Assembly: GCA_038496445.1 (NCBI GenBank)
Contig: JALMLS010000208.1
Location: forward strand, 62,001 to 126,000
Length of the DNA stretch: 64,000 nt
Source: Trichosphaerium sp. ATCC 40318
Taxonomy: Eukaryota > Protista > Tubulinea
Direction: 5' to 3'
The stretch's first letter is position 1. Each line of letters starts with the position of its first letter. Under the pieces are notes generated by a model that worked only from the letters and a program-made list of their open reading frames with translations, searched no databases and had not been told where the DNA came from. The position numbers were made by a program, and so were the translations under genes. Positions 23,552 to 62,414 of the stretch are shown here, in pieces.

Positions 23552-24393
23552 ATGCCTTACAAGGTACTATCACCTGTAAATGAGAAAAGTACATCCAAAC
23601 CAGAAAAATGCCATCTATTACACCTTCCAGTTGAGATTCAGCTTGATATAATCGATTTGGACCCGTCACTGTACATTCATTGGCCAAGTCTTACGAAACA
23701 CACTGCAGTGACTACAAGATTTGATGCTGACATGAGAAAACATGGAAAATGGCTAAGAAGATACCAAAATGGAGTAATTGTAAGTTGAGTGGGCTTTTTT
23801 TCCTCTTTTATACATGGTTAAGTTAAGACTAGGCTCAACAGTGTTATTTCATTAACAATAAATATCAAGGAGAATATACGAGGTGGTATGATACTGGCCA
23901 ATTAAAACGGCAGTGCAGGTATATCAACGGTAAGCGAGAAGGAGAATACAAGAGGTGGTATGCCAATGGCCAAATGGCTGAGCAGTGTTTCTTCATCAAT
24001 GGTAACTTTGAAGGAGAATACAAGAGGTGGTATGCCAATGGCAACTTGTTAAAGCAGGCTACCCTCATCAATGGTAAGCGAGAAGGAGAATACAAGAGGT
24101 GGTATGGAAGTGGTCAATTAGATGAGCTGTGTATATTCATTAATGATAAGGAAGAAGGAGAATACAATTGCTGGCACAGAAATGGTCGTTTGTCGAGGCA
24201 GCTTACCTACATCAACGGTCACAAAGAAGGAGAATACAGGAGGTGGCATGCAAATGGCCAATTGGCAGAGCAATGCATGTACATCAATGATAAGCGAGAA
24301 GGAGAATGCAGGAAGTGGTTTGATGATGGTCGATTTGCAGGAAGTTCTACATATAAAAATGGCACTAAAACCTGTTATTGCCATGTACTGTGA
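23552..24393 (+). CDS. F-box + MORN-variant (YwqK-like) repeat protein with a C-terminal CaaX motif
   Basis: LLHLPVEIQLDIIDL (F-box); one intron at about 23780-23832; 24-aa (72-bp) repeats INGKREGEYKRWYANGQL; ends CYCHVL*. Confidence 0.8.
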
Positions 24394-33455: not shown

Positions 33456-34603
33456 ATGAAGTTTTCAGGGTTTAAAAGGAAGCTCCAAGGTGATTATCTC
33501 CTCCAATACCTTATCAAAGAGCATGTTGAGCTTAGTGGAGATGTAAATAAACTCATTCGTACTCTGGACGCTGAAAACGCGTGTATGCGCATTAAAGGAG
33601 AAGAAATATGCTCAGATATCTGGAATACAATATTTATTCATTTAATCTACTCTGATCCTTCTGAATCTATCAATACTATAATCGTTGTATGTAAGAGATG
33701 GCAAGGAATAGTAGCAAACGTTAGTTTTTGGAAGAGAATGGTCAAATTTCATTGGAACTTTGAAATACACGACAAAGTACAAGATTGGCGTGATGTTATG
33801 TGTTATTTCCGTAAACGGCACAAATACGTTAAAAATTGTATACAAGAGGTCAAGGCAAGGGAGTATGGTTTTAATATTGTCACGTGGGAACAGCATCTTC
33901 AACATGATGACAATGACCAATTGTACTTTTTTTTTTTCCTTCTTTCTTTTTTTTTTCTTCGTTTTGACTTAACCCTCTTTTCCAACTCATTCACCGTTTT
34001 GTTGTGTTGATTAGCATTAATCTATTTATTCATATAATGTTGTTTATAGGTTCTATTATGAGTACCGAGCTGTTTTCTCACCACATTCTCTGGCAATACT
34101 TGTTGTTAAAAGCAATGTTGTCTATGATAAAGAGCTAGGAACTCTTTGTTATACAGAACATAAACTAGTACTAAAAACCTACATGAATAGTAACAAAAAG
34201 GTACCTACCATAATATAGAAATATTTTGGAAGGCTGTGAAACACGTGGGAATGTAAAAAACAGCAATACTTTACACTGCCAAAAAAACTGACACTGACTT
34301 TTTTCCACGAAGACTGAGTTTTTTATCCTTGACTATGAAGATATATTATGGAGTGATTGTGAAGAGTTCATTACCAAAGCCAGTCGTAATATGGGATATA
34401 CTACAAACAATTACAAAGACAAGATCAAATTCCTATCAATTGTATGTGGATATTTTAACAACCTTGAAGCATTTGAAAGACTTGGTGATGAGATTTATTC
34501 TGCAATTACTACAGAGCAACATAAGGAAAAATTTACTTTTCTTCATAATCTTTATGAAGAACATGCCATGGGTAGTTACGCAAAAATATGGTTGTTAAAC
34601 TAA
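33456..34603 (+). CDS. F-box-like protein, multi-exon
   Basis: ICSDIWNTIFIHL...IVVCKRWQGIVANVSFWK (F-box-like). C-terminal domain not recognised. Confidence 0.6.
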
Positions 34604-38632: not shown

Positions 38633-40935
38633 TTAACAACCTAAATAATGCAGCAGCTTCTCGGATCCTATTTTGAAAAAAAAAATAAGAAAAAAATAAG
38701 ATAAATCTGCAACAAAAAAAAAAAAGCATAAGCAGCGATCTCTCGATGTCACATGTGAATCATAGATCTGTATATCAAGATATGATTCAAAGGATAATAA
38801 AACCCATTTGAGGGGTAAAAAATAACGTACTTTGAGTGACCTACACAAAACGCTTCAAGTTCTGCAAAAAGATCCTTGACGTCTATACTTCCATTTCTTA
38901 TAAGTGATTGCAAAAAAATACATACAAGGCGAACAAGCCTATGTTGCATAAATCTATCATTTACGTTTTGGCATGAAGCAACACAACCAGAGATGTACAA
39001 GTGAAGAAATTCACGTGGAAGGTCTAGAGAGCAAGTAAGAAATCTGAAGTTTTTGGTGGTTGCCAAGTTCCAAAAAATAAGAAAAAAAAGAGAAAAAAAG
39101 AAATAGACTGTACCAACTGTTGTTGTTAACTTATTCACAACTTCCATTGAATGTAAAGTATGCTCCATATTGATTAATTGTGTAAAACAACTATAAATCA
39201 AGGAGTAAGAGTTAAAACCAATAAAGGAATCTAACTTTTGATTATGACGTACTCTGCAATTTGAGGTGATTTAAAAAGCTTTAAGAGAACTTCCACAGCG
39301 ATATCAGGATTACTCTCAACTAATGAAGGGAGTTTAGCAGGCTTGAAACCGCATTCAAAAACAAGATCATCTTGTTGAGTAATCGCCCGTAAAACTTCCT
39401 GTAGACAAGTTAAAAGACAAAGCAAGAACAAGTGTCAAAAAATAGATGGTAAGGGAAGAAAAAAGTCAAACAACAAAGTGACCACCAGTGGCGATTTTTT
39501 TCAACAATTTAAACACTAGTGTACTGAAAGCATATCCAAAAATATTGTACTCATTGATGAGGAGTAACAAATCTTTTTGTAGCGAAGGGAATACGCCAAA
39601 GAAGAAAAAAATATTAAAAAAAGAACTGTGGCAAGTTACCTTCTTATCATTCGGCTTTAAAGGAGAATTAAAAGACGTCTTAACCATTTCTTGAATACGC
39701 TGATTCTTAGACCAAGATATGGTATCAGTATAATCCCATAAAACTTCAGGAACAAAACCTCCAGGCACAATCCATTTACCCTTTTTTTGAAGAAAAATAA
39801 ATAAATAAACACTTGACTATAATGAGCGCTTATCGCTCATTTCGTATATTTCTACTATGTAGAACGTACTTCGGGAATAGTTGATTCAAAACGAACAAGC
39901 GGTGGCCGTACAAACGCTGGTTCAAACCTGTCATAAACGCCAAATTCGATACCATTAAGCCTAATACAAATTTAAGTAAGACAACCAAAAAAAAAAACTC
40001 TTTCTTTCAAGAATTCTTTTAAAACAGAACCAAGTTCGTTCTCATAGCACCCAGAAAGCGTTTAATATATTGTAGTACATATAACAGGAAAAAAGAATTC
40101 TCAACAATCCAATTAAAGGCCAGAATTCTTCAAAAAACAAAAAACTTACTTTGAAGGCCAATGAAGAAAAAAAAGTTTTGGTTTGTCGACGTGTACCTGT
40201 TTTCTATAGTGCAATCGCTGCCCGGTACATGTATCATATTACGCAAAGAGTGATTAAGGAAAGGATTGGGATGTTCGGGTATACGTCGGCGATGCTCGTT
40301 AAACATATGAGCTGTGTCTGTTAATGCGTTAGAATAGCGCGTATTGGCAGTAGGAGTATTTACCTGGCATTGAAGATGCCTTTGTGTCATCCTTATCATC
40401 TATTAGCGATGATATTGTCTTTTCGCTTACCTGAAGGCATACTATTAGCGATTGAATAGCAATTTGAAATAAATAAATATAAAATGGCACTTGAAGCATC
40501 GAAAATGGTTTCTAAAGTAACAAGTAGCTATAACAGCGATTTCTGGCTACAAATGGTTTTCTCTTGTGAGTAAAATCCAATACATGCGCAAATGCGTACT
40601 TTATTAGAGTCATCACCTAAGATACCAATAATGAAGTTCTTTTCGTAGGTTTGAGTTTGTTCGCCGCTAAGGAGCTCCAAAAATAATGGGAGGAACGGAT
40701 TTGCTAAAATATCTCCATTGTGCGAGTCATAGAGTATGTATAGTGCCGGAATTCTTTGTTCGATTGATAATAGATTATCCTGCACTAATGTGTAAAGTAC
40801 AGTACATAAATCGAACTGAGATGCATCAGGAAATGCACTGCGAAAAGCAGCGCAACATTGATCCAGTGTTCTCGTAGAATCGCTGATAATGTCAACAATC
40901 GCTGTCAACTGCTTCATAGACGTTTGATAAGCCAT
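38633..40935 (-). CDS. CNOT11: CCR4-NOT complex subunit 11
   Basis: ANPFLPLF; FEPAFVRPP; [17 protein letters not shown]; [10 protein letters not shown]; [13 protein letters not shown]...[16 protein letters not shown]...ELEAFC. Confidence 0.9.
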
Positions 40936-46789: not shown

Positions 46790-47949
46790 TTAGTCCAAAT
46801 GAGGCAATGGGTTAAAGCAGGCTTCAACAAAAGCATGTCTACCTTGATCAGTTACATTAGTGCCTGTAAGACTAATTGCGTGAACACCAACTAAGTACTG
46901 AACTCCTTTATCACTTATACTTGTGAAGCTAACATCAATCGTATGTACTCCAGCCAATGCCTTCATCCCTTTATCTGTAATGTAACACTCGGATAAATAA
47001 ATTGAATGAACACCAGCTAACGACTTGAGTCCTTCATCTGAAACCTGTGTTTTATGCAGGTTTATAGCATGAACACCTGCTAAAGCTGTGATCCCAACAT
47101 CTGTAACGTTTGTTTGGCATAAGTTTATCGTATGAACACCAGCTAGTGCCCGAATACCGTCATCTGTGATACCTTTACATTTTCTTAAACTTATTGTATG
47201 AACTCCAGCTAATGCCTTAATGCCTTCATCTGTAATACCTTGACAGAAAGAGAGATTGATTTTATGAACGCCAGCTAGAGCCTTAATACCATCATCTTTC
47301 ACTTGCTGACAATCACCTAGATAAATTGTATGGACGCCTGCAAGTGCCTTAATGCTATCATTAGTAACAGTATGACACTCTGTTAAATTGATTGTATGAA
47401 TGCCTGCTAATGCCTCAACATTTGAAATATTTGTGTTGTGGGAAAGATCAATTGTATGAACACTAGATAATTGTAAAAAAGCCTTTAGACCTTCATTGTT
47501 AACATAAGTGCCTGATAACTGTATTGTTTTTACTCCAGACAGATGTTTGAGATGATCATAAGTAACATAACTAAATCTCTGATGAAAGTCAATTTTCTCA
47601 ACACGTTTAAAAGCTTTAAAATCAGATGGTTTCAGTGTTGATATGCCACATTCAAATCTGAGGCCATATGCTCTTCTGAGGTACTTTAAATGTTGACGTT
47701 TGATATAAAATTTAATGGATATAGTGTTTGTTTTGATGAGATGTGGCATTGTTTTGAATAGTTTTTTGAGTTTTTTGATTCGATTACAATAACTCTTCTG
47801 TTTTCATATCCCACGTGTTGTATTGCGATCGTTTTTAATAGTTTTGATGTACGTACTACGCAATGCATAGATAGAGGCGAAACGAATTGTAAAATAGTGA
47901 CAATAACTTCAACAGGGATATCATCAAAGAATGCGCTCTTTGAGTTCAT
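46790..47949 (-). CDS. Intronless F-box + cysteine-containing LRR protein, with one frameshift in an A-homopolymer near 47760-47780
   Basis: FDDIPVEVIVTILQFV (F-box); about 10 repeats of LAGVHTINLxxCxxITDxGIKA. Collinear with the intact paralog at 57787 once the frameshift is bridged. Confidence 0.85.
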
Positions 47950-48289
47950 CGCCAGTTATTTTGGATAATAGAATGTTGATATTATGGGTAACGTATAAAC
48001 CAGAGACAAGCACTAACATGATATTAGCTGTGCTGTGACTTGATATTTGTTGAGGTAACAAAAGTACCTTTTTATGATCTTGGATTGTATAAACCAAAGA
48101 TGAGCACTAATGTGAAATCATTAAGATGTGTTGTGACTGTAGTTGACTTGACGTTTTTATACTTAAAGTCTATCCTTGTTAGATTGTGTAGTTTGACAGC
48201 CTTTAAGCTTGGTGTTCTTAAATAGCCATTGTAAAGAGTTTGGTGTGGCTCTTAAAACGTCTTCTAGAGGTATTGAACCGGTGGTCATC

Positions 48290-51200
48290 GTCTCTTCTCC
48301 ATGCCAACTAAGAAAAATGAAGCCGTCTGAATTGTAAGCTTTACCATTGATTTAAGAAGTGCAGGTAATGTCGACTTGTATTTTGGGGTTATGTGGGCAC
48401 AAAGGTACCTTACACACAAAGAAGTGTTATCATAGCGATCCCCTTTCTTTAAAATATTATAGAATGCCATTCTTTACATACAATACAAGAAATAGAACAA
48501 TGGGAGGAGATGGCAGAAATACCGGTCCGAACCATTTAACGGTTGAAAATACAAGAAACACAACTTCCGTCCTGTTGGCTTTGTTGCTCTGCAATCACCA
48601 AAGCTTACCAACACCGCTGATCACATGGTAGATGATATATTAATTAGACTTCCACACGTGTTTAGGTGGACTCATATGCCTGTTGCTACTGTTCTTCAAA
48701 TGATGACAAATGAGTTTGTATACATGGGCAATGGTTCGTCTTGATACTGGTACTTCGAGCCTCAAGAGTATACTATAGAAGTAATCAATTCACAGTTTAA
48801 AACTTCAATTTTAAACGTTTATTCTTGTTTCTTTTTCTAATTACAAATCATTCTCCCTCAACAGTAGATGAAAGCCGTTGAATCATTCTCAGCTGGTTGA
48901 CAAGCACCATAAATCAAATCATTATCTTCATCAAATCCAGGACTTCCTGGGCCAATAAAGCGCATCAAATGTTTATCTGTTTCTCTTATATTACTCTGAA
49001 GAGGTGGCACGTGATTTCCTTCATACTTGGTAAGAAAGTGAGTTTTACCAGGAATCTGGAGTCTATTGAATTCATCACTAAACTGATTGTACTCGATGTC
49101 ACTTATATTATACGGCTGAAAAATAGCGAGAGATTGCTTTGACAAAGTATCACATAATTTCGAATGTCCGCCATTCTCCCTAGCCTCCTTGATTATATTT
49201 TGAACCTCTGTTGGGTCGTCAATGACAATAGAGTCATCACCTAAAAAGTTGATTAAAAGCAACAACATACATATTCAAAAGGTTTAAGGTCTCTGGCTCT
49301 ATGATCCAGGGATCAAAGGTGAGATGTATTCTCTCCTCTAATCTGGTATTATAGAGCAACAAAAATGTGTGAATCTACCAAATGCTAAAACCCAAAATTC
49401 ACTAAGTGCCAAACTGTTTGTCTGGCTTTCTGCAAAGAGAAAATTCTTGCTTTTTAAGAATGTAGAGTGCTGACTTTAAATGTTTTCCAAATAACTTAGC
49501 TAGTGGTAAAAGTGGGATTTTAACGGATAGAGCCGGTTAACTGTTTAAGTTTTTGTAGCCAGCTGAGCCGTGCAGCTGATGAAAGTAAACGAAAAGTTTG
49601 TAATCTAATCACTTCAACTTTTTTTTGTTTCTTCTTACCGTTTTCTTTTAAAATAATCAGCATGCCATCCATACCACCTTTTGGCATTGGTAATTTAAAA
49701 TAAGTTGCTTCTAGACAGTCAAAACATCGGTAGAACCTTTGAACAAACATAAACATAATGAAGAAGTGTTATTTCAAGCTCATACGTTGATTGATCATCC
49801 CACTTACGCCAAACATCAGAAGGGTCATTGTGTGGTATGTACTTACCAACAGTTTGGTATTGTAAAGGTAAATCTTTGTCAGGAATGGCTTTGTTCCCAG
49901 TCGCATAGTCATCGTCATTTTCATGCATTTTGAAGCGATAAGGGATTCTAAAACAGGTTTGATTATGAAGAAAAAAATGAGAAAGACATACCCTGAACCA
50001 AGTGGATAGTGTAATTGTGAATTAGGACCTAATTCATAGAAAACATCGTATAGTATCTGTGAGGCATATTGACGGATCACAGATCCATATATGGAGTCTT
50101 TTTTGTACTCGTTAAAGCCACAGCCTTGTAAAATGTTAAAAAGAATCACTCTAAAAAAACTGAGTGCACCGAAGAGCAACCTTGCAAGTGTATAGCTCGT
50201 AGCTAATATCTTTGTTCCTAGCTCATCTGATCTATTATGATAACATACAATAAAATCCTAATATCAGGTATGGTTAGAGAGAAGGGCGAGTGAAATTGAC
50301 TGAATCGTTCAAATGTCTTTATTTTTTTTCGATAAAATCCCACTGAACTACTTTTTCTTCTTTAAGCTTAAAAAAACAAATTTTGGGGATGAAACAAAGG
50401 AATGATTGGTTCACCCAATAAAGTATCGGTTTTGAGTTTGTTGTTATCGTACGATAAACTTTTCCTTGGAAAAATCGTAAACTTTTGCAGCTGCTCCTAA
50501 TCCCATGTAGGTTTGCTTACAAAATAAAGGTATCCCAGTACGTCCAATCAAACAAGTACATAAACCTTGACTGTCATCGTCAAACGGTACTTTCTAAAGC
50601 AACATGAGTACACAAAACAAATGCTCTCGCTAAGCCATCTATAAAAGATAGAAGCAACACTAAAAACTAAGTACAAAGAAAAGTAAAGTTGTTCCTTTCC
50701 CAAAAAATTCTTGGTTAAACCAGCTATGAAATTTTGCTACCGGCTACGCCGGGACGGACCGCTGCAACCTTTACTTTTAACCCCAAAAGCAATAGTATTA
50801 CCTCTCTACCGTTCCACACGTTTATTGTATCTAATGGATAATTCCCAAATGCCCTCCTAAACGTGGTACATTTTTCTATTCCGATACCCAGTTTTAGGCG
50901 ATGAACAATGCGGTTATACCAAGCTCCTTTACCAACAAAAGAAGGATGAACGAATGGAGGTGGAGGAGAAGGAGAAGCTAATAAACCTTAAATTGATAGG
51001 TAAGTGTCAAAACGAGACTTGGTTAAAGCTTTGAGACGAATGCACGTGAAATAAAATTGTTGTAACGTACTTCTTGGTGTTCTGAACTTTTGAGCGTAAA
51101 CACTCTTCCAGTCGATGTATTCAACTGCTATACTATGTATGGTAGTACTAACGCGTAGCATATTCCCTGAGGGAGATAGTTCGCGAATATTAGAGCCTAC

Positions 51201-51470
51201 AACGGTTTAACGTCTAATTCAATAGAGGACACCTACAAATCATCCCCCATACTTCCACTGGCAACCCACCTAGCTCTGGATCTCCAATTGAACTAAAATC
51301 AAACGAAGTAGCCTTGACAAGCCGTTAAAATAACGAAATACATGAAAAAAAAACGTGCGTACACTGAGTGGTATTTTCTTTACAGGTGGTAACGTTACAT
51401 CGAAGACAGTTTGTTTTCTTGGCGCCTTACCGCCTGAAGGCTTCCTTGCTGTTTGCTTTGTGCGTGCCAT
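48290..51470 (-). CDS. Histone H3 N-terminal-tail mimic fused to an F-box and a long unrecognised C-terminal region (3' end and some exon phases unresolved; possible frameshifts)
   Basis: Exon 1 (51470-51363) is MARTKQTARKPSGGKAPRKQ.... Exons 2-3 (51312-51237, 51196-51071) splice in frame to ELGGLPVEVWGMICSNI...LRVSTTIHSIAVEYIDWKSVYAQKF. No histone fold follows. Confidence 0.7.
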
Positions 51471-52384
51471 GTGGCTGCTAAGAAAAAATGTAATGAATAA
51501 GTTTTCACGTGAATAAAGTGATCACTTTACGTCAATTACGTGAATTTGTGACACGAGACGGAATAATGCTTTGTAAGAAAGTCATGTACATATCGCTTAG
51601 TGCTTAGAAAAAATAAATCGTGAAACGGGGATATCTATTACCGTGAATGTGTGCCAGATACTAAATGAAGATGTGACACATTTCAAGCGTTTGGTTGGAC
51701 TAGACAAGACTGACAATACATTGTCAGACACTATAGATCGAACAATGCAGAGTAGCGAGCAATCAAAACCCCTGTATCCACCCTAAAATCCTTTATCTTC
51801 TAAATGTAGAATAAATCCGCTCATGTGGCTAAACTTGAGCCAACAAAGACGGATGGACTTTCCTCCCAGAGCACCCTTGATTGTATTGTTAATCAAATGT
51901 AACAAAAGAAGTCCAACTTCGCCTAGGAAAAGAACAATCCCAACAAGGTTATAACTTCATAGTGGTACTCAGATCACTCTGATGGTACGAATCATATTAG
52001 TTTGTCAGTTGTATTTTGCGTATCTCAGTATGATTAATAACTGGACGTAGGTTAACAGGATCGATAGTACTTTACAAAAAGATATTTGGATAAATATCGT
52101 TCAAACAATTGTTGTACTGTACTCTGTAGGCAAGAACTATCGGCATTTGTAATTGCTCTACGACAGCTGCAACACATATGAAGTACCAAATGCGAAATCT
52201 CTAAAATGTACGCCAGAGCATTGGTAAATCCAATGTATTGTATGGGGATTGAATTTGTTTAACTTTTTTACGACCGACTCTCAATTTGGGAACTACCTAC
52301 ACCTTAACACGGAATTCTCGGGTGACTTAGCGTGTTTTCTTTGTCATATTGTTCACCCCGCTCTTAACACGTAACTTCTCGAAC

Positions 52385-53507
52385 ATGCAGCTATCTTTCG
52401 CACTTGTTTTTGTAGTATTAGCTTTAGCAACAACTGTTTATGCAATACCGGATTTCAAAGTCCGTAAAAATGGTTCTATTGCAAATGGCACCTTTTGCGG
52501 AGGTTGTAAGTTCGCTATAAACTCTATAAAGACTAAGGGTACTATATTTGCTCCTTTTCGCGTCTGACTCGTCTTTAAGGTTGCTCCTACGTTTGTGCTG
52601 TTGATATGGAGCCTCTTACGCTAGTTGCTTGTAGATTGGTTGTTGTTACTCTTTGCAAGCAAGCAGTCAAGCTACTAGCGGAAGGTGCAACTGCTGAAAA
52701 CATTTGCACTGCTTTTGGTACGTTAATCATTTTAGAAGAACGAACTGAGTTCCTTGCTGAGAGCAATCTAAAAACGCATAGTGTTTTGCTTTTTTTGGGT
52801 ATTTTACTTAAAAGTACCACCACAGTGGTGTACACTTTTTGTTGCATTAAAGGAAAGAGTTGCTTTTTGGGCTTTCGTTCTTTTGTACTCAAAATCCAAG
52901 AGCGCCGGATATGTATTGTAGAGTGGAAGCGTACATTTTACCAACCGAGAGTTCTTTCAGTTTTTTGCAAATTACAAAAAAAACCCCAAAAATTCGTTTT
53001 GTTTTAACAGTTTTCGCAAAACCTGGCTCATTGACAATACTCTATGTCGCCTCTACTAGTTATTTATATACTATTTTTCTTGTCTATTACATTCTTTCGC
53101 CCTTTTTCATTACCAGCTCTTGTGTATTTGGCTCTTTTTTTTTGCTGTAAGCCTTTCTTGCTTTTTTCTTTAATCACTCAGCTCACACTCTACTACAGGT
53201 ATGTGCAACCCACAAAATGGGACATGTAAATGCGGTGCTTGTACAAAGTATGAGTATGGTAAAAGATGTCTTTCTTTTAATAGAATGTGCCCAAATGAAC
53301 CATTTCAGCGGTTTGATGCATCTCTTGATAAAATTGAGAAAGAGGCATACTCAAAAAGAGACAATGAAGGTTTGTTTACCGTTACTTTGGTTTTTTGATT
53401 ACACTCAATGCTTTCTAGGAGATAATACTAAACGATCAAGTGAAGCAATTTGTTTCAAAGGCCAGTGCAATGCCGAAAACGATGGATGTTGTTTGACATG
53501 TTTTTGA
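52385..53507 (+). CDS. Secreted Cys-rich protein with a saposin-like N-terminal region
   Basis: Signal MQLSFALVFVVLALATTVYA; FCG|GC...C...LCKQAVKLLAEGATAENICTAF; Cys-rich tail ending CFKGQCNAENDGCCLTCF*. Confidence 0.6.
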
Positions 53508-57786: not shown

Positions 57787-58953
57787 ATGTCACAGATGGA
57801 CCAACACAGTGCATTCTTTGATATTCTGCCAATTGAAATCATTGTATTAATCTTACACTCTGTTTCGTCTCTAACGATGCACTCAGTAGTCCGTACTTCA
57901 AAACTACTGAAGAATATTGCGATTAAATACTTAGGATATGTAAATAGAACGAATATTGTTATACACAAGGAGAGAAGACTACGACAGCTTTATAAAACAG
58001 CACCACATCTTATTAAATCAAAAAACCTGATAATACAATATCCTATCAAACAAAAACATTTAAAGTACCTCAATGGAGCATATTCTATCGAATTTAAAGT
58101 ACTAAGAAAGCTGTCATTTAAGAACTTGAACAATGTTCACAGTGTTACCTTTAAATGGCATACATTTACTGATAATCAACTACAACAGCTTGCAGGCATA
58201 CCTACAATACTGCTATATTCCTGCTATGGAGTAACAGATGATGGCATCAGAGCTTTGGCTGGTGTACATACAATTTCTTTATCAGACTGTAAGACAGTAA
58301 CAGATGAAGGTATCAAGGCTTTAGCTGGCGTTCATATGATTGATCTTAACAATTGCAAGTCAATAACAGATGATGGCATTAAAGTGTTGTCAGGTGTACA
58401 CACTATCAAGTTACATAATTGCCAATCAATTACAGATGAAGGTGTTGAAGTGTTGGCTGGAGTACATGCCATCAACCTATGCTATTGCAATGTCACAGAT
58501 GAGGGTATCATGGCATTGGCTGGCGTTCATACAATAAACTTAACTGACTGTTTTAGAATCACAGATTCAGGTGTTAAAGCATTGGCTGGTGTTCATACTA
58601 TTTATCTACAAGGTACAAACGTGACAGATGATGGTGTTAAGGCACTAGCAGGAGTTAATACAATTAGTCTTGATGCAACAGCAGTAACAGATTCAAGTGT
58701 TATAGCACTAGCTGGTGTTCATACAATACACCTCAGATCCACTAAAGTTACAGACAATGGTATTAAAGCTTTAGTTGGTGCTCACACAATAAACCTGCAA
58801 GGTTGTAAACATGTTACACATGGCGGTATTCTAGCACTTTTAGATAGTAACAAATCCCATTATATGAATCTTACACTGCCCTATCTCACTATAGATCAGT
58901 TTTTGGCTAGATATGGTAGCAACCGTTGTTTTCTAAGGCAACCAGAAAACTGA
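57787..58953 (+). CDS. Intronless F-box + cysteine-containing LRR protein (388 aa)
   Basis: FFDILPIEIIVLILHSV (F-box); about 10 repeats of LAGVHTIxLxxCxxxTDxGIKA; uninterrupted ORF. Confidence 0.9.
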   Translation: MSQMDQHSAFFDILPIEIIVLILHSVSSLTMHSVVRTSKLLKNIAIKYLGYVNRTNIVIHKERRLRQLYKTAPHLIKSKNLIIQYPIKQKHLKYLNGAYSIEFKVLRKLSFKNLNNVHSVTFKWHTFTDNQLQQLAGIPTILLYSCYGVTDDGIRALAGVHTISLSDCKTVTDEGIKALAGVHMIDLNNCKSITDDGIKVLSGVHTIKLHNCQSITDEGVEVLAGVHAINLCYCNVTDEGIMALAGVHTINLTDCFRITDSGVKALAGVHTIYLQGTNVTDDGVKALAGVNTISLDATAVTDSSVIALAGVHTIHLRSTKVTDNGIKALVGAHTINLQGCKHVTHGGILALLDSNKSHYMNLTLPYLTIDQFLARYGSNRCFLRQPEN

Positions 58954-59868: not shown

Positions 59869-62414
59869 TAACGTTCTCAAACTCCGAATATTTGCAGTTT
59901 TGAATATACCACTTTGAATACAAAAAAGATTCGAATTTTATTCAAATAAAAGTCACGTGATATCACGTGTTACATGGGTTCTACGTCTATAATTATCTGT
60001 TGACGTAATAGTGATAAGTTATTTACAAGTTTGCGTGATAACCTATTTCTGTCTGGTGTTATCATTCTCCCTGTAAATGAAAAGGTTCGTTCTGTCATTG
60101 CTTGAGAAGCTGGTATTGCCAAATACTGTTGAGCTAGCTTTGCCATGGTAGGATACATTACTTTGTGTTGTTTCCACCATGAAAGTGCTGTGAAGTCATC
60201 AGAATCAAGAGCTTCAAGTTTTTTGTACTCTTTAAATTCATCCACCACCACAACCTTACGTCTTTTACGTCTATGACTGTAAACAACGTTAATATTGCAC
60301 AAGAAAAAAGCAAAATATGTACTTTCTAAGATCCTCAAATGCATTAGTTTCACGTTTTCGCTTCTTTGGCTGTGTCGTTTCAGGTTCATCTACATGCAAT
60401 GTGTTTTCTGGTGGATTCACTGTCACCTAAAAAAAAATAAACCACAATAAAATAATTTAAGATAACGCACTTGCTCTGTTCTTTTGACCTCTTTGTCATA
60501 AAGTTCTTTGAGTACTTCCCATGCTTCAACTGTATCACCTGGTTCCAAGTGTTTAGCGTCTCTAAACACAGGATGTAGAATGGTAGCCAATGATGTGACC
60601 ACTGGCAAATTATCCCACATGACACGAATTTCATCCAAAAATTCTTGATAAATGGTTGTTAATTTTAGTTTTGCATTTCTTCGTTGTTTACTGCATACAG
60701 CTGACTTCTCAGAAGCTTAAATAGTATTAAATTGAATTACTGGAGTGTCAGTAACACATACATGGTTTGAGCTTGTCCTCAATTGTACTTTCAAGCATTT
60801 CAAGCATTGCTAAGATAAGTGCTTGAGTTGGTTGTTTTTCGGCTTCTAGCGCCCGTATAACCTTTACAGTGGAAGAAAAGGTCTCAATGATATCATCAAT
60901 AATTGTCCAGTGGTATGTAGTAAAGTCAGGGATGTTCTTTAAAAACTAAATGCATATCAGTGCTCTGAGCGTTTACTATAAAAAAAAGTACCTTTTTCTC
61001 CACTTCTTTCGTTAATAGTTTTAACTCTTCTTGTACTGCTTTAAAGGAGGAGAGCATACTAATTTTGGAGCTCCATCGAGTGACAACATCACGTTTTACT
61101 TTTTTAGCTTTGCCACCACATACTTTAATCCATGCTAGATACATGTTGTTGGATGTATTTAATCCAGTAATGAATTGTCGAATGGGCACAAAAATAGGGT
61201 TTTCCAGATCCTCTAACACATGTGACATTGCATTGTTCAACATGTGACACACACAGCGAAGATCTTCGACAGTTCTACAAAAGTAAGTAAATACTCCTCA
61301 AAAAGAAAAAAAAAAACATACGCTGGATCAATTTCGAGATCTTCGTCATCATCAAATTCCTCTCCGCGTAGGATACTATATTAGAACAAGTAAAAATTAA
61401 TTGCTTTGAATGTTATTTTTTGTGTTAATTTAGTACGTACGCATAAGTATACTTGATAGAAGCTACTTCACCACCATCTGTGACACCTGCGACAGGTATG
61501 ACTTCATCACCCAACCACGATTCACCTGAGCTATCAGCTTCGCCTGTAATGACACTTGCGACCAATCTACCAATTGTTGTGGCTGTAATAAACATAAATT
61601 AAATAAATTAAGTAATGAACGCTATGATGCACCTTTATGGTTACCTTCAACGTATGGTAACCCAATGAGAGCTCGTCTTGGTTTAAAATCATCTGTTAGC
61701 CAATGCAGTGTTACTGCACAATAATAATCCTTTGTTTGACTACATTTCCAAAGATCGGCAGCAAATGTAGGGTATTTGGCTCTTTGTGTTTCTTTTTTTA
61801 AGTCACGCATTGTGCTCTTGTACTTTTCGTCAATTATGCCTCTCATGGTATTTGGACAGGGTAATGTGTAGCCTGCAATCAGCTCCCTCATCAAGTCAAC
61901 AAATTGAGGGTTTTGCACCAAGTTTAGTGGTAAGTTACCAACCACAATCAGCTTTGTCACGAGTTCATCAATGTGCTAAAAAAAGAAAGTAAATTTCGAA
62001 GGAAGGAGTAAATGAGCGTGCGCACCTTTTGTTTCTTTTTTGATACGGGTATAACACTTTTGTTACCAAAAAAGTCTTCCATTACTTGAGCTTGTTTAGT
62101 TTTTCCATGCCATGGAAATTCGTCTTCTTTACTTTTGTATCCGTGATCTTTGCGCAAATGTTTGAGCTGGTTGGAAGTGGTGCCATGTTGAGGAGGAACA
62201 AATGTCTGACAAAACACACATCTATTGTCTGTGTAGTACTTGTGAACATTGGATCTTTGCTTGTAGTGCCTTTTTTGGTGCACGATGTTGCTTGCCTGAA
62301 GTTGCATTTTGGTGTTCTAAAAATATTCAAATATACAACAGAAAGATTCAAATTCGCTATTTTTGGCGTGTATTCAAATATTCAAATTCAAATATTCAGA
62401 GTTTGAGAACGTTA
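59869..62414 (-). mobile_element. Autonomous-looking hAT DNA transposon (2546 bp)
   Basis: 26-bp TIRs TAACGTTCTCAAACTC(C/T)GAATATTTG at 59869-59894 and 62389-62414 (1 mismatch). Perfect 8-bp TSD CTGAAGTA at 59861-59868 and 62415-62422. Subterminal ATTCAAA repeats. Confidence 0.97.
59970..62307 (-). CDS. hAT transposase (BED zinc finger, DDE domain, dimerisation domain), 9 exons
   Basis: CVFC...HLRKDH (BED); AADLW (D), VTDGG (D), RCVCHMLN (CxxH), VTRWSS, LEAEKQPT (E), SWWK...YPTMAKLA..YLAIPASQAMTERTFS. Eight GT-AG introns, all phase-compatible. Confidence 0.93.

Follow-up and report, generated by a model that had tools for sequence, protein, structure and literature searches.

A gene on the minus strand of a 64,000-nucleotide stretch of the Trichosphaerium sp. 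ATCC 40318 genome (contig JALMLS010000208.1, positions 62,001 to 126,000; hereafter, the window, with positions counted from its first letter) is intact and expressed, consists of ten exons, and encodes a lineage-restricted non-histone protein of 499 residues. Its predicted N-terminus reproduces histone H3 residues 1-19 almost exactly and is here placed on an orphan body that has no histone fold. We tentatively favour the reading, to which we give somewhat less than an even chance, that the product is a host-made mimic of the whole H3 tail that would be read or modified by the H3-tail machinery of the cell.

The open reading frame (ORF) that starts from the ATG at 51470 on the minus strand begins MARTKQTARKPSGGKAPRKQ, and direct reading of the same strand from 51470 to 51411, the segment that covers the start codon and the H3-tail copy (Met and residues 1-19), yields ATG followed by ARTKQTARKPSGGKAPRKQ. 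The tail, ARTKQTARKSTGGKAPRKQ, stands immediately after the initiator Met, as it does in members of the H3 family. When aligned with a real H3 (P0011), it is identical in 17 of the 19 positions, contains no indel, and has the initiator Met in the same registration. The only two differences, S10 to P and T11 to S, are those that had been pointed out in a preliminary description of this locus. Residues 1-131 were compared with 5.8 billion proteins, and the sole matches were H3 histones or read-throughs of H3 exon 1, all via a 20-residue stretch with 90% identity (best E 7.7e-5), in a search in which full-length paralogues of about 500 residues fell outside the length filter and H3 words crowded the candidate list. 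As judged from these alignments, a chance origin of the likeness is excluded. The first five residues, M-A-R-T-K (51470-51456), also fit the motif M-Z-R-x-K of the H3TM proteins, in which Z is a residue permissive for Met removal. The G+C content of the 60 nt encoding the tail is 52%, compared to 39% in the remaining coding sequence.

The likeness to H3 is confined to this segment. Past residue 19, no H3 likeness rises above that of shuffled sequences (the VKK motif was reached by 1863 of 5000 shuffles), and a further candidate, the piece RRNTSKARTP from a paralogue, was discarded with 4477 of 5000 shuffles reaching it. Searches for the histone fold (PF00125) after the tail gave no Pfam match in any exon or typed stretch at E<=10, so that the absence of this fold reported in the preliminary description stands. 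Within the 64-kb window, neither further H3-tail words nor, in a tblastn search, paralogues of the gene were found.

The window has the features of eukaryotic DNA, with 34-40% G+C and GT..AG introns of 40-400 nt. Most of the gene model was derived from contigs of two public runs, X1 and X2, which are listed merely as contigs, with their kind unstated; we consider them RNA-derived because they skip GT..AG-bounded segments and align to the window with zero mismatches. The junctions 50802/50593, 50453/50257, 50170/50124, 49992/49947, and 49639/49240 are fixed by these contigs without mismatches, and for the junction between exons 8 and 9, 49786/49736 is the sole GT..AG pair that leaves the frame open while matching the contig ends on either side. 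All exons are on the minus strand. Exon 4 (50802..50986, residues 104-165), which is Pro-rich at its start and lacks an in-frame Met, is joined at its 3' end, 50802, to 50593 in an X1 contig; exon 5 (50453..50593, residues 166-212) has both joints (50593/50802 and 50256/50452), GT..AG after a shift of the cut and with 0 mismatches, in an X1 contig; and exon 6 (50170..50257, residues 213-241) is contained in contig 3 of X1. The same contig, together with contig 7 of X2, covers exon 7 (49992..50124, residues 242-285) with 0 mismatches, and it also covers exon 8 (49786..49947, residues 286-339). Contig 2 of X1 includes exon 9 (49639..49736, residues 340-372) and exon 10 (48858..49240, residues 373-499 and the TGA/TAA-type stop), joining 49637-49736 to 48841-49238 across an intron of 398 nt (GTAAGA..TTTTAG). 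The splicing of exons 4-10 is seen in RNA contigs, and the 3' two-thirds of the gene are transcribed and spliced.

Upstream of exon 4, three exons were predicted. Exon 1 (51363..51470, residues 1-36) encodes the tail and, in residues 20-36, a linker without H3 likeness, and ends at the donor GTACGC at 51362. Exon 2 (51237..51312, residues 37-61; acceptor CAAG, donor GTAGGT) and exon 3 (51071..51196, residues 62-103; acceptor GTAG, donor GTACGT) both keep the frame. The three predicted introns, of 50, 40, and 84 nt (GTACGC..AG, GTAGGT..AG, and GTACGT..AG, respectively), resemble the verified ones (44-49 nt, donors mostly GTA-type). The junctions 51363/51312 (GTACGC..CAAG, 50 nt) and 51237/51196 (GTAGGT..GTAG, 40 nt) had been proposed in the preliminary description and prove to be canonical and in frame. 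Together, the ten exons yield one frame that starts at 51470, stays open for 499 codons, and closes with the stop codon at 48860-48858. The earlier suspicion that some downstream phases do not resolve and that the gene might be decaying is refuted, because these 499 codons remain open when the RNA-derived junctions are applied and because a homolog is colinear with the spliced model (see below). Ab initio exon chaining by codon score was also tried and discarded: the chain ran into the next gene and skipped two real introns.

Apart from the tail, the protein is dominated by a body of about 390 residues that is an orphan without an assignable fold. Among 1.84 billion representative sequences compared with exon 10, a single true relative was found, P0001, an ORF from a marine-protist transcript of the MMETSP collection; a second match was a false one caused by low complexity. 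In a blastp alignment, P0001 is colinear with residues 238-464 of the spliced model (48966..50182, minus strand), with 39% identity and an E value of 5e-46, across four introns. This colinearity, which includes exon 8 and the homologous part of exon 10, supports the 3' exon model independently. The region is common to the gene and this single relative, and its top conserved motif, F-K-x-x-E-N-D-D-D-Y-A-T-G, includes the ENDDDYATG encoded in exon 8. No further relatives of P0001 were found, an exact-product look-up of P0001 returned no record, and no further loci emerged when exon 10 and P0001 were each used to scan metagenomes. Residues 104-499, examined exon by exon, as a typed stretch of 132 residues, and via P0001, gave no match in Pfam, and P0001 has no sequence relative in the PDB. 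Structural models of the body were too poor to be of use for a fold search (predicted local distance difference test, pLDDT, of 0.34 for ESM; pLDDT of 45 for AF2 of P0001). ADP-ribosyltransferase (ART)-like families (DUF3626, DUF2441, and OspC) obtained protein-atlas scores of 0.77-0.86 with exon 10 only and were rejected, as P0001 did not reproduce these hits and no Pfam or PDB match accompanied them.

We infer that one mRNA carries exons 1-3 together with exons 4-10. Exon 4 is open across all 61 codons from its acceptor, which we estimate to have a probability of ~0.014, given that ~6.8% of codons should be stops in DNA of this composition. Because these 61 codons are open, the frame is fixed by RNA, and the exon contains no Met, exon 4 is coding, and the start has to be in an upstream exon; the only in-frame ATGs upstream of it are those at 51470, Met60, and Met74. 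A further X2 contig, about 88% alike and representing the transcript of a paralogue, matches the end of exon 1, continues with 29 diverged letters, and then matches the rest of exon 2. If the first base of exon 2 is set aside, the 29 letters correspond, in diverged form, to the 29 nt that follow it in that exon, and this transcript lacks exactly the predicted 50-nt intron 1, at the predicted position. Of the RNA support that the preliminary description had called for at the two 5' junctions, that for 51363/51312 comes from the paralogue transcript only, and no exact contig spans exons 1-3. Diverged X2 contigs match exons 1-2 and exon 8, as would be expected if one or more paralogues are transcribed.

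If the tail is translated with the rest of the protein, the Ala at position 2 would permit removal of the initiator Met, leaving a free Ala1 at the mature N-terminus. This N-terminus would keep R2, T3, K4, Q5, T6, A7, R8, and K9 in H3 spacing, followed, also in H3 spacing, by G12, G13, K14, A15, P16, R17, and K18, with positions 10 and 11 as the only ones that differ; residues 1-9 and the K14/K18 modules look retained. The predicted layout is the tail, the linker, a weak F-box-like motif, and the orphan body of ~390 residues. The H3-tail readers, writers, and carriers of the organism itself (PHD, WD40, and chromo-type modules, enzymes acting on K4 or K14, and histone importins) may bind or modify such an N-terminus, and the location, partners, or stability of the orphan protein would thereby be coupled to the chromatin machinery. 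This mechanism is proposed by analogy with the much shorter M-Z-R-x-K N-termini of the H3TMs: in vitro, PHD readers, Tudor readers, and NuRD bind human proteins of this group, which have only M-Z-R-x-K in common with H3 (PMC8166343).

Several observations weigh against the whole-tail mimic. P0001, the only homolog, begins at the equivalent of residue 237, downstream of the tail. In the public runs, there is no RNA contig with zero mismatches over 50932-51483, so that exons 1-3 are uncovered. Shorter products that lack the tail could be made from Met60, Met74, or Met195. Furthermore, Pro10 does away with the S10 phospho-switch and is expected to weaken recognition centred on K9. An unlikely alternative is that the tail is a non-functional relic, that is, a 5' fragment of an H3 gene located upstream of an unrelated gene and either untranslated, with a downstream start, or neutral. 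The missing exact RNA contig over exons 1-3, the in-frame Met60, Met74, and Met195, the lack of the N-terminal half in the sole homolog P0001, and the higher GC content of the 60 tail-coding nucleotides (52% against 39%) are all in line with a relic. However, the ATG is in exact H3 registration, the frame continues unbroken for 165 codons across three short canonical introns as far as an exon that is anchored by RNA and lacks Met, and in the paralogue transcript exons 1 and 2 are joined at the same place. An import function also has a low probability, namely, that the tail serves mainly as a signal for nuclear import or chaperone handling via the route of histone H3. Residues 1-28 of H3 are an import signal in yeast, and residues 20-28, including K23, contribute to importin binding. 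The basic residues 1-19 are intact here, including K14 and K18, and no other obvious import signal was noted among the 499 residues, but H3 residues 20-28 with K23 are not conserved, and a generic basic signal would need neither 17 of 19 identical residues nor the exact N-terminal registration.

The two remaining alternatives assign a bait function to the tail. According to one of these, which we regard as improbable, the protein is a substrate adaptor of an SCF complex, in which an F-box binds Skp1/Cul1 and the H3 tail baits H3-tail binders for ubiquitylation. This possibility hinges on residues 53-95, LPVEVWGMICSNIRELSPSGNMLRVSTTIHSIAVEYIDWKSVY (51096..51264, minus strand), a segment split by intron 2 in which the pattern LPVEVWGMIC...LRVS...IDWKSVY suggests an F-box-like motif; its elements LPVEVW...I...LRVS...W have a spacing near that in the neighbouring F-box/leucine-rich repeat (LRR) genes, and the window is rich in F-box genes. 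The F-box asserted in the preliminary description was, however, not recovered. The spliced peptide of exons 2 and 3, in two splice versions, produced 0 matches at E<=10 to the Pfam families F-box (PF00646), F-box-like (PF12937), and F-box_4 (PF15966), whereas the N-terminus of a neighbouring gene, used as the positive comparison, scored E 9e-4 for F-box-like in the same test, and the PDB sequence search with the candidate segment found no F-box protein. The lack of an F-box hidden Markov model (HMM) hit had been named at the outset as an outcome that would refute the proposal. Two custom HMMs drew on local and amoebozoan-type F-box N-termini. One, built from four local F-box-like N-termini, gave 5.9 bits, a score reached by 4 of 2000 shuffles, and aligned mainly LRVS..W; the other, for which 15 sequences were used, relatives of the F-box/LRR gene next to this one among them, gave 4.9 bits (12 of 5000 shuffles) and aligned mainly LPVEVW. 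As the motif had been picked by eye before scoring, the p of ~0.002 is post hoc. The AF2 model of residues 37-165 (pLDDT 42) was too poor for a fold search. In addition, the substrate module of a usual F-box protein lies C-terminal to the F-box and is not an N-terminal peptide of 19 residues. Residues 53-95 are best described as F-box-like but unconfirmed, on the strength of a weak motif match, and the label "F-box" should not be relied on for this gene. The other alternative, which we consider very unlikely, is that the tail is a host bait or decoy that titrates or reports pathogen chromatin effectors, such as H3K14 methyltransferases of the Legionella RomA/LegAS4 type or factors of giant viruses. 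In LegAS4/RomA, the ankyrin domain binds the free A1 amine, R2, K4, and Q5 of H3, and the SET domain binds G12, G13, K14, P16, and R17, with the stretch K9-R17 held largely via the backbone and the T11 carbonyl as the one named contact there (2026 preprint). All these side chains are kept in the tail copy, the K4-K14 spacing is unchanged, and the replaced positions 10 and 11 fall within the largely backbone-bound stretch. However, no part of any H3 tail is more conserved than the residues listed, which makes their retention unspecific, and Pro10 may alter the path of the backbone. A broader version, in which this locus belongs to a set of genes with near-complete H3 tails on non-histone scaffolds that would form a histone-tail 'integrated decoy' system for trapping or reporting RomA/LegAS4-type effectors or for bringing H3-tail binders to a ubiquitin ligase, also seems decidedly doubtful.

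The whole-tail mimic, as favoured here, can be compared with several known systems. Internal histone mimics include the automethylation sites of G9a and SETDB1, K126 of LIG1, and the ARSK motif of influenza NS1, in which ARKS- or ARTK-type motifs are written and read like H3K9 or H3K4. These mimics span 4-6 residues, are usually internal or C-terminal, and are centred on one lysine, whereas here the whole first half of the tail is found at a true N-terminus, albeit with the K9 context damaged by S10P. The H3TMs (VRK1, BCL11A/B, SALL1-4, FOG1/2, and PCLAF, among others; Chen et al. 2021, PMC8166343) are closer, being non-histone proteins that start like H3 once the Met is removed. However, they share only ~4-5 residues with H3, in contrast to 17 of 19 in the present case, including the K9, K14, and K18 contexts, and the carrier here is an orphan protist protein without a chromatin domain. 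With histone H3 and its variants, the protein has residues 1-19 and the start registration in common, but it lacks the histone fold and continues into an unrelated body in a 499-residue product. The likeness to F-box proteins, such as the FBXL-type neighbours, is limited to a pattern LPxE[IV]...I...L...VS about 50 residues from the N-terminus and to the location in an F-box-rich region. Unlike these proteins, the product has Ile at the conserved Trp position, no F-box HMM match, and no LRR, WD40, Kelch, or other known substrate domain. The integrated decoys of plant NLR immune receptors are similar in concept only, as copies of a host protein targeted by a pathogen that are fused to another protein and allow an attack on the copy to be sensed or absorbed, and the gene described here has no NLR architecture.

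Histone mimicry and the H3TMs are already known; what appears to be new is a tail copy of 19 residues on an unrelated protein. Among open-access papers and preprints, we found none that describes a non-histone protein beginning with a near-complete H3 tail, an H3-mimic F-box protein, or a histone-tail integrated decoy. Given that histone mimicry is known mainly as motifs of 4-6 residues in animal, viral, and bacterial factors, a host copy of 19 residues would be far more complete. In principle, several readers and writers could act on such a tail together, for instance, readers of A1/R2/K4 and modifiers of K14/K18. The tail could also reveal a use of histone-tail recognition outside chromatin in protists, including possible links to ubiquitylation or to pathogen defence.

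Some variation was noted within the transcribed part of the gene. An X2 contig uses an alternative donor at 50180, joined to 50124, with an intron of 56 nt, not 45 nt; the resulting frameshift leads to an early stop, and this form probably represents an unproductive isoform or noise in splicing. An X1 contig (depth 7.9) has G for A at 48872 of the plus strand, which changes TTC to CTC and, hence, Phe496 to Leu near the C-terminus, and may reflect an error or a difference between alleles or strains. A search of Rfam over 48000-52600 returned just a sub-threshold chance match to a miRNA, and neither exon 1 nor exon 10, each taken as an ORF-style call, returned a record in an exact-product look-up. 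Upstream of the gene, the intergenic segments 51664-51718 and 51801-51868 are matched by diverged contigs of X2, X4, and X5 (5-9 mismatches), and this stretch is probably a dispersed repeat.

The window contains several genes with F-box-type N-termini. Two paralogous genes, at 47949-46790 (minus strand) and 57787-58953 (plus strand), encode F-box-like and LRR_6 proteins with near-identical N-termini (FFDDIPVEVIV and FFDILPIEIIV). The former matches Pfam F-box-like with E 9e-4, and the LRR_6 matches of the two paralogues have E values of 1e-23 and 4e-19. The best relatives of the 57787-58953 gene are MMETSP protist transcripts (49% identity), with a further match from MMETSP0405. The LRR part at ~47190-47235 belongs to a large repeat family, as many diverged contigs match there. 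F-box-type starts are also present at 33456-34010 and 23552-24393 (both on the plus strand); one of these has a weak Pfam match to F-box/F-box-like (E 1e-3 to 4e-3), and the other has LPVEIQLDII preceding repeats.

The divergent neighbour of the H3-tail gene, at 52387-52740 (plus strand), about 900 bp upstream, is a small gene with a signal-peptide-like start, MQLSFALVFVVLALATTVYA, and Cys-rich segments (FCGGCKF... and ...LCKQAVKLLAEGATAENICTAFG) that recall saposin or amoebapore-type proteins. More distant in the window, an ORF at 59970-60389 (minus strand) carries the dimerisation domain of hAT-family transposases (PF05699, E 1.7e-19) and represents a DNA transposon or a domesticated copy of one, and an exon at 38749-39201 (minus strand) encodes the domain of CCR4-NOT subunit 11 (PF10155, E 4.9e-29), a housekeeping gene.

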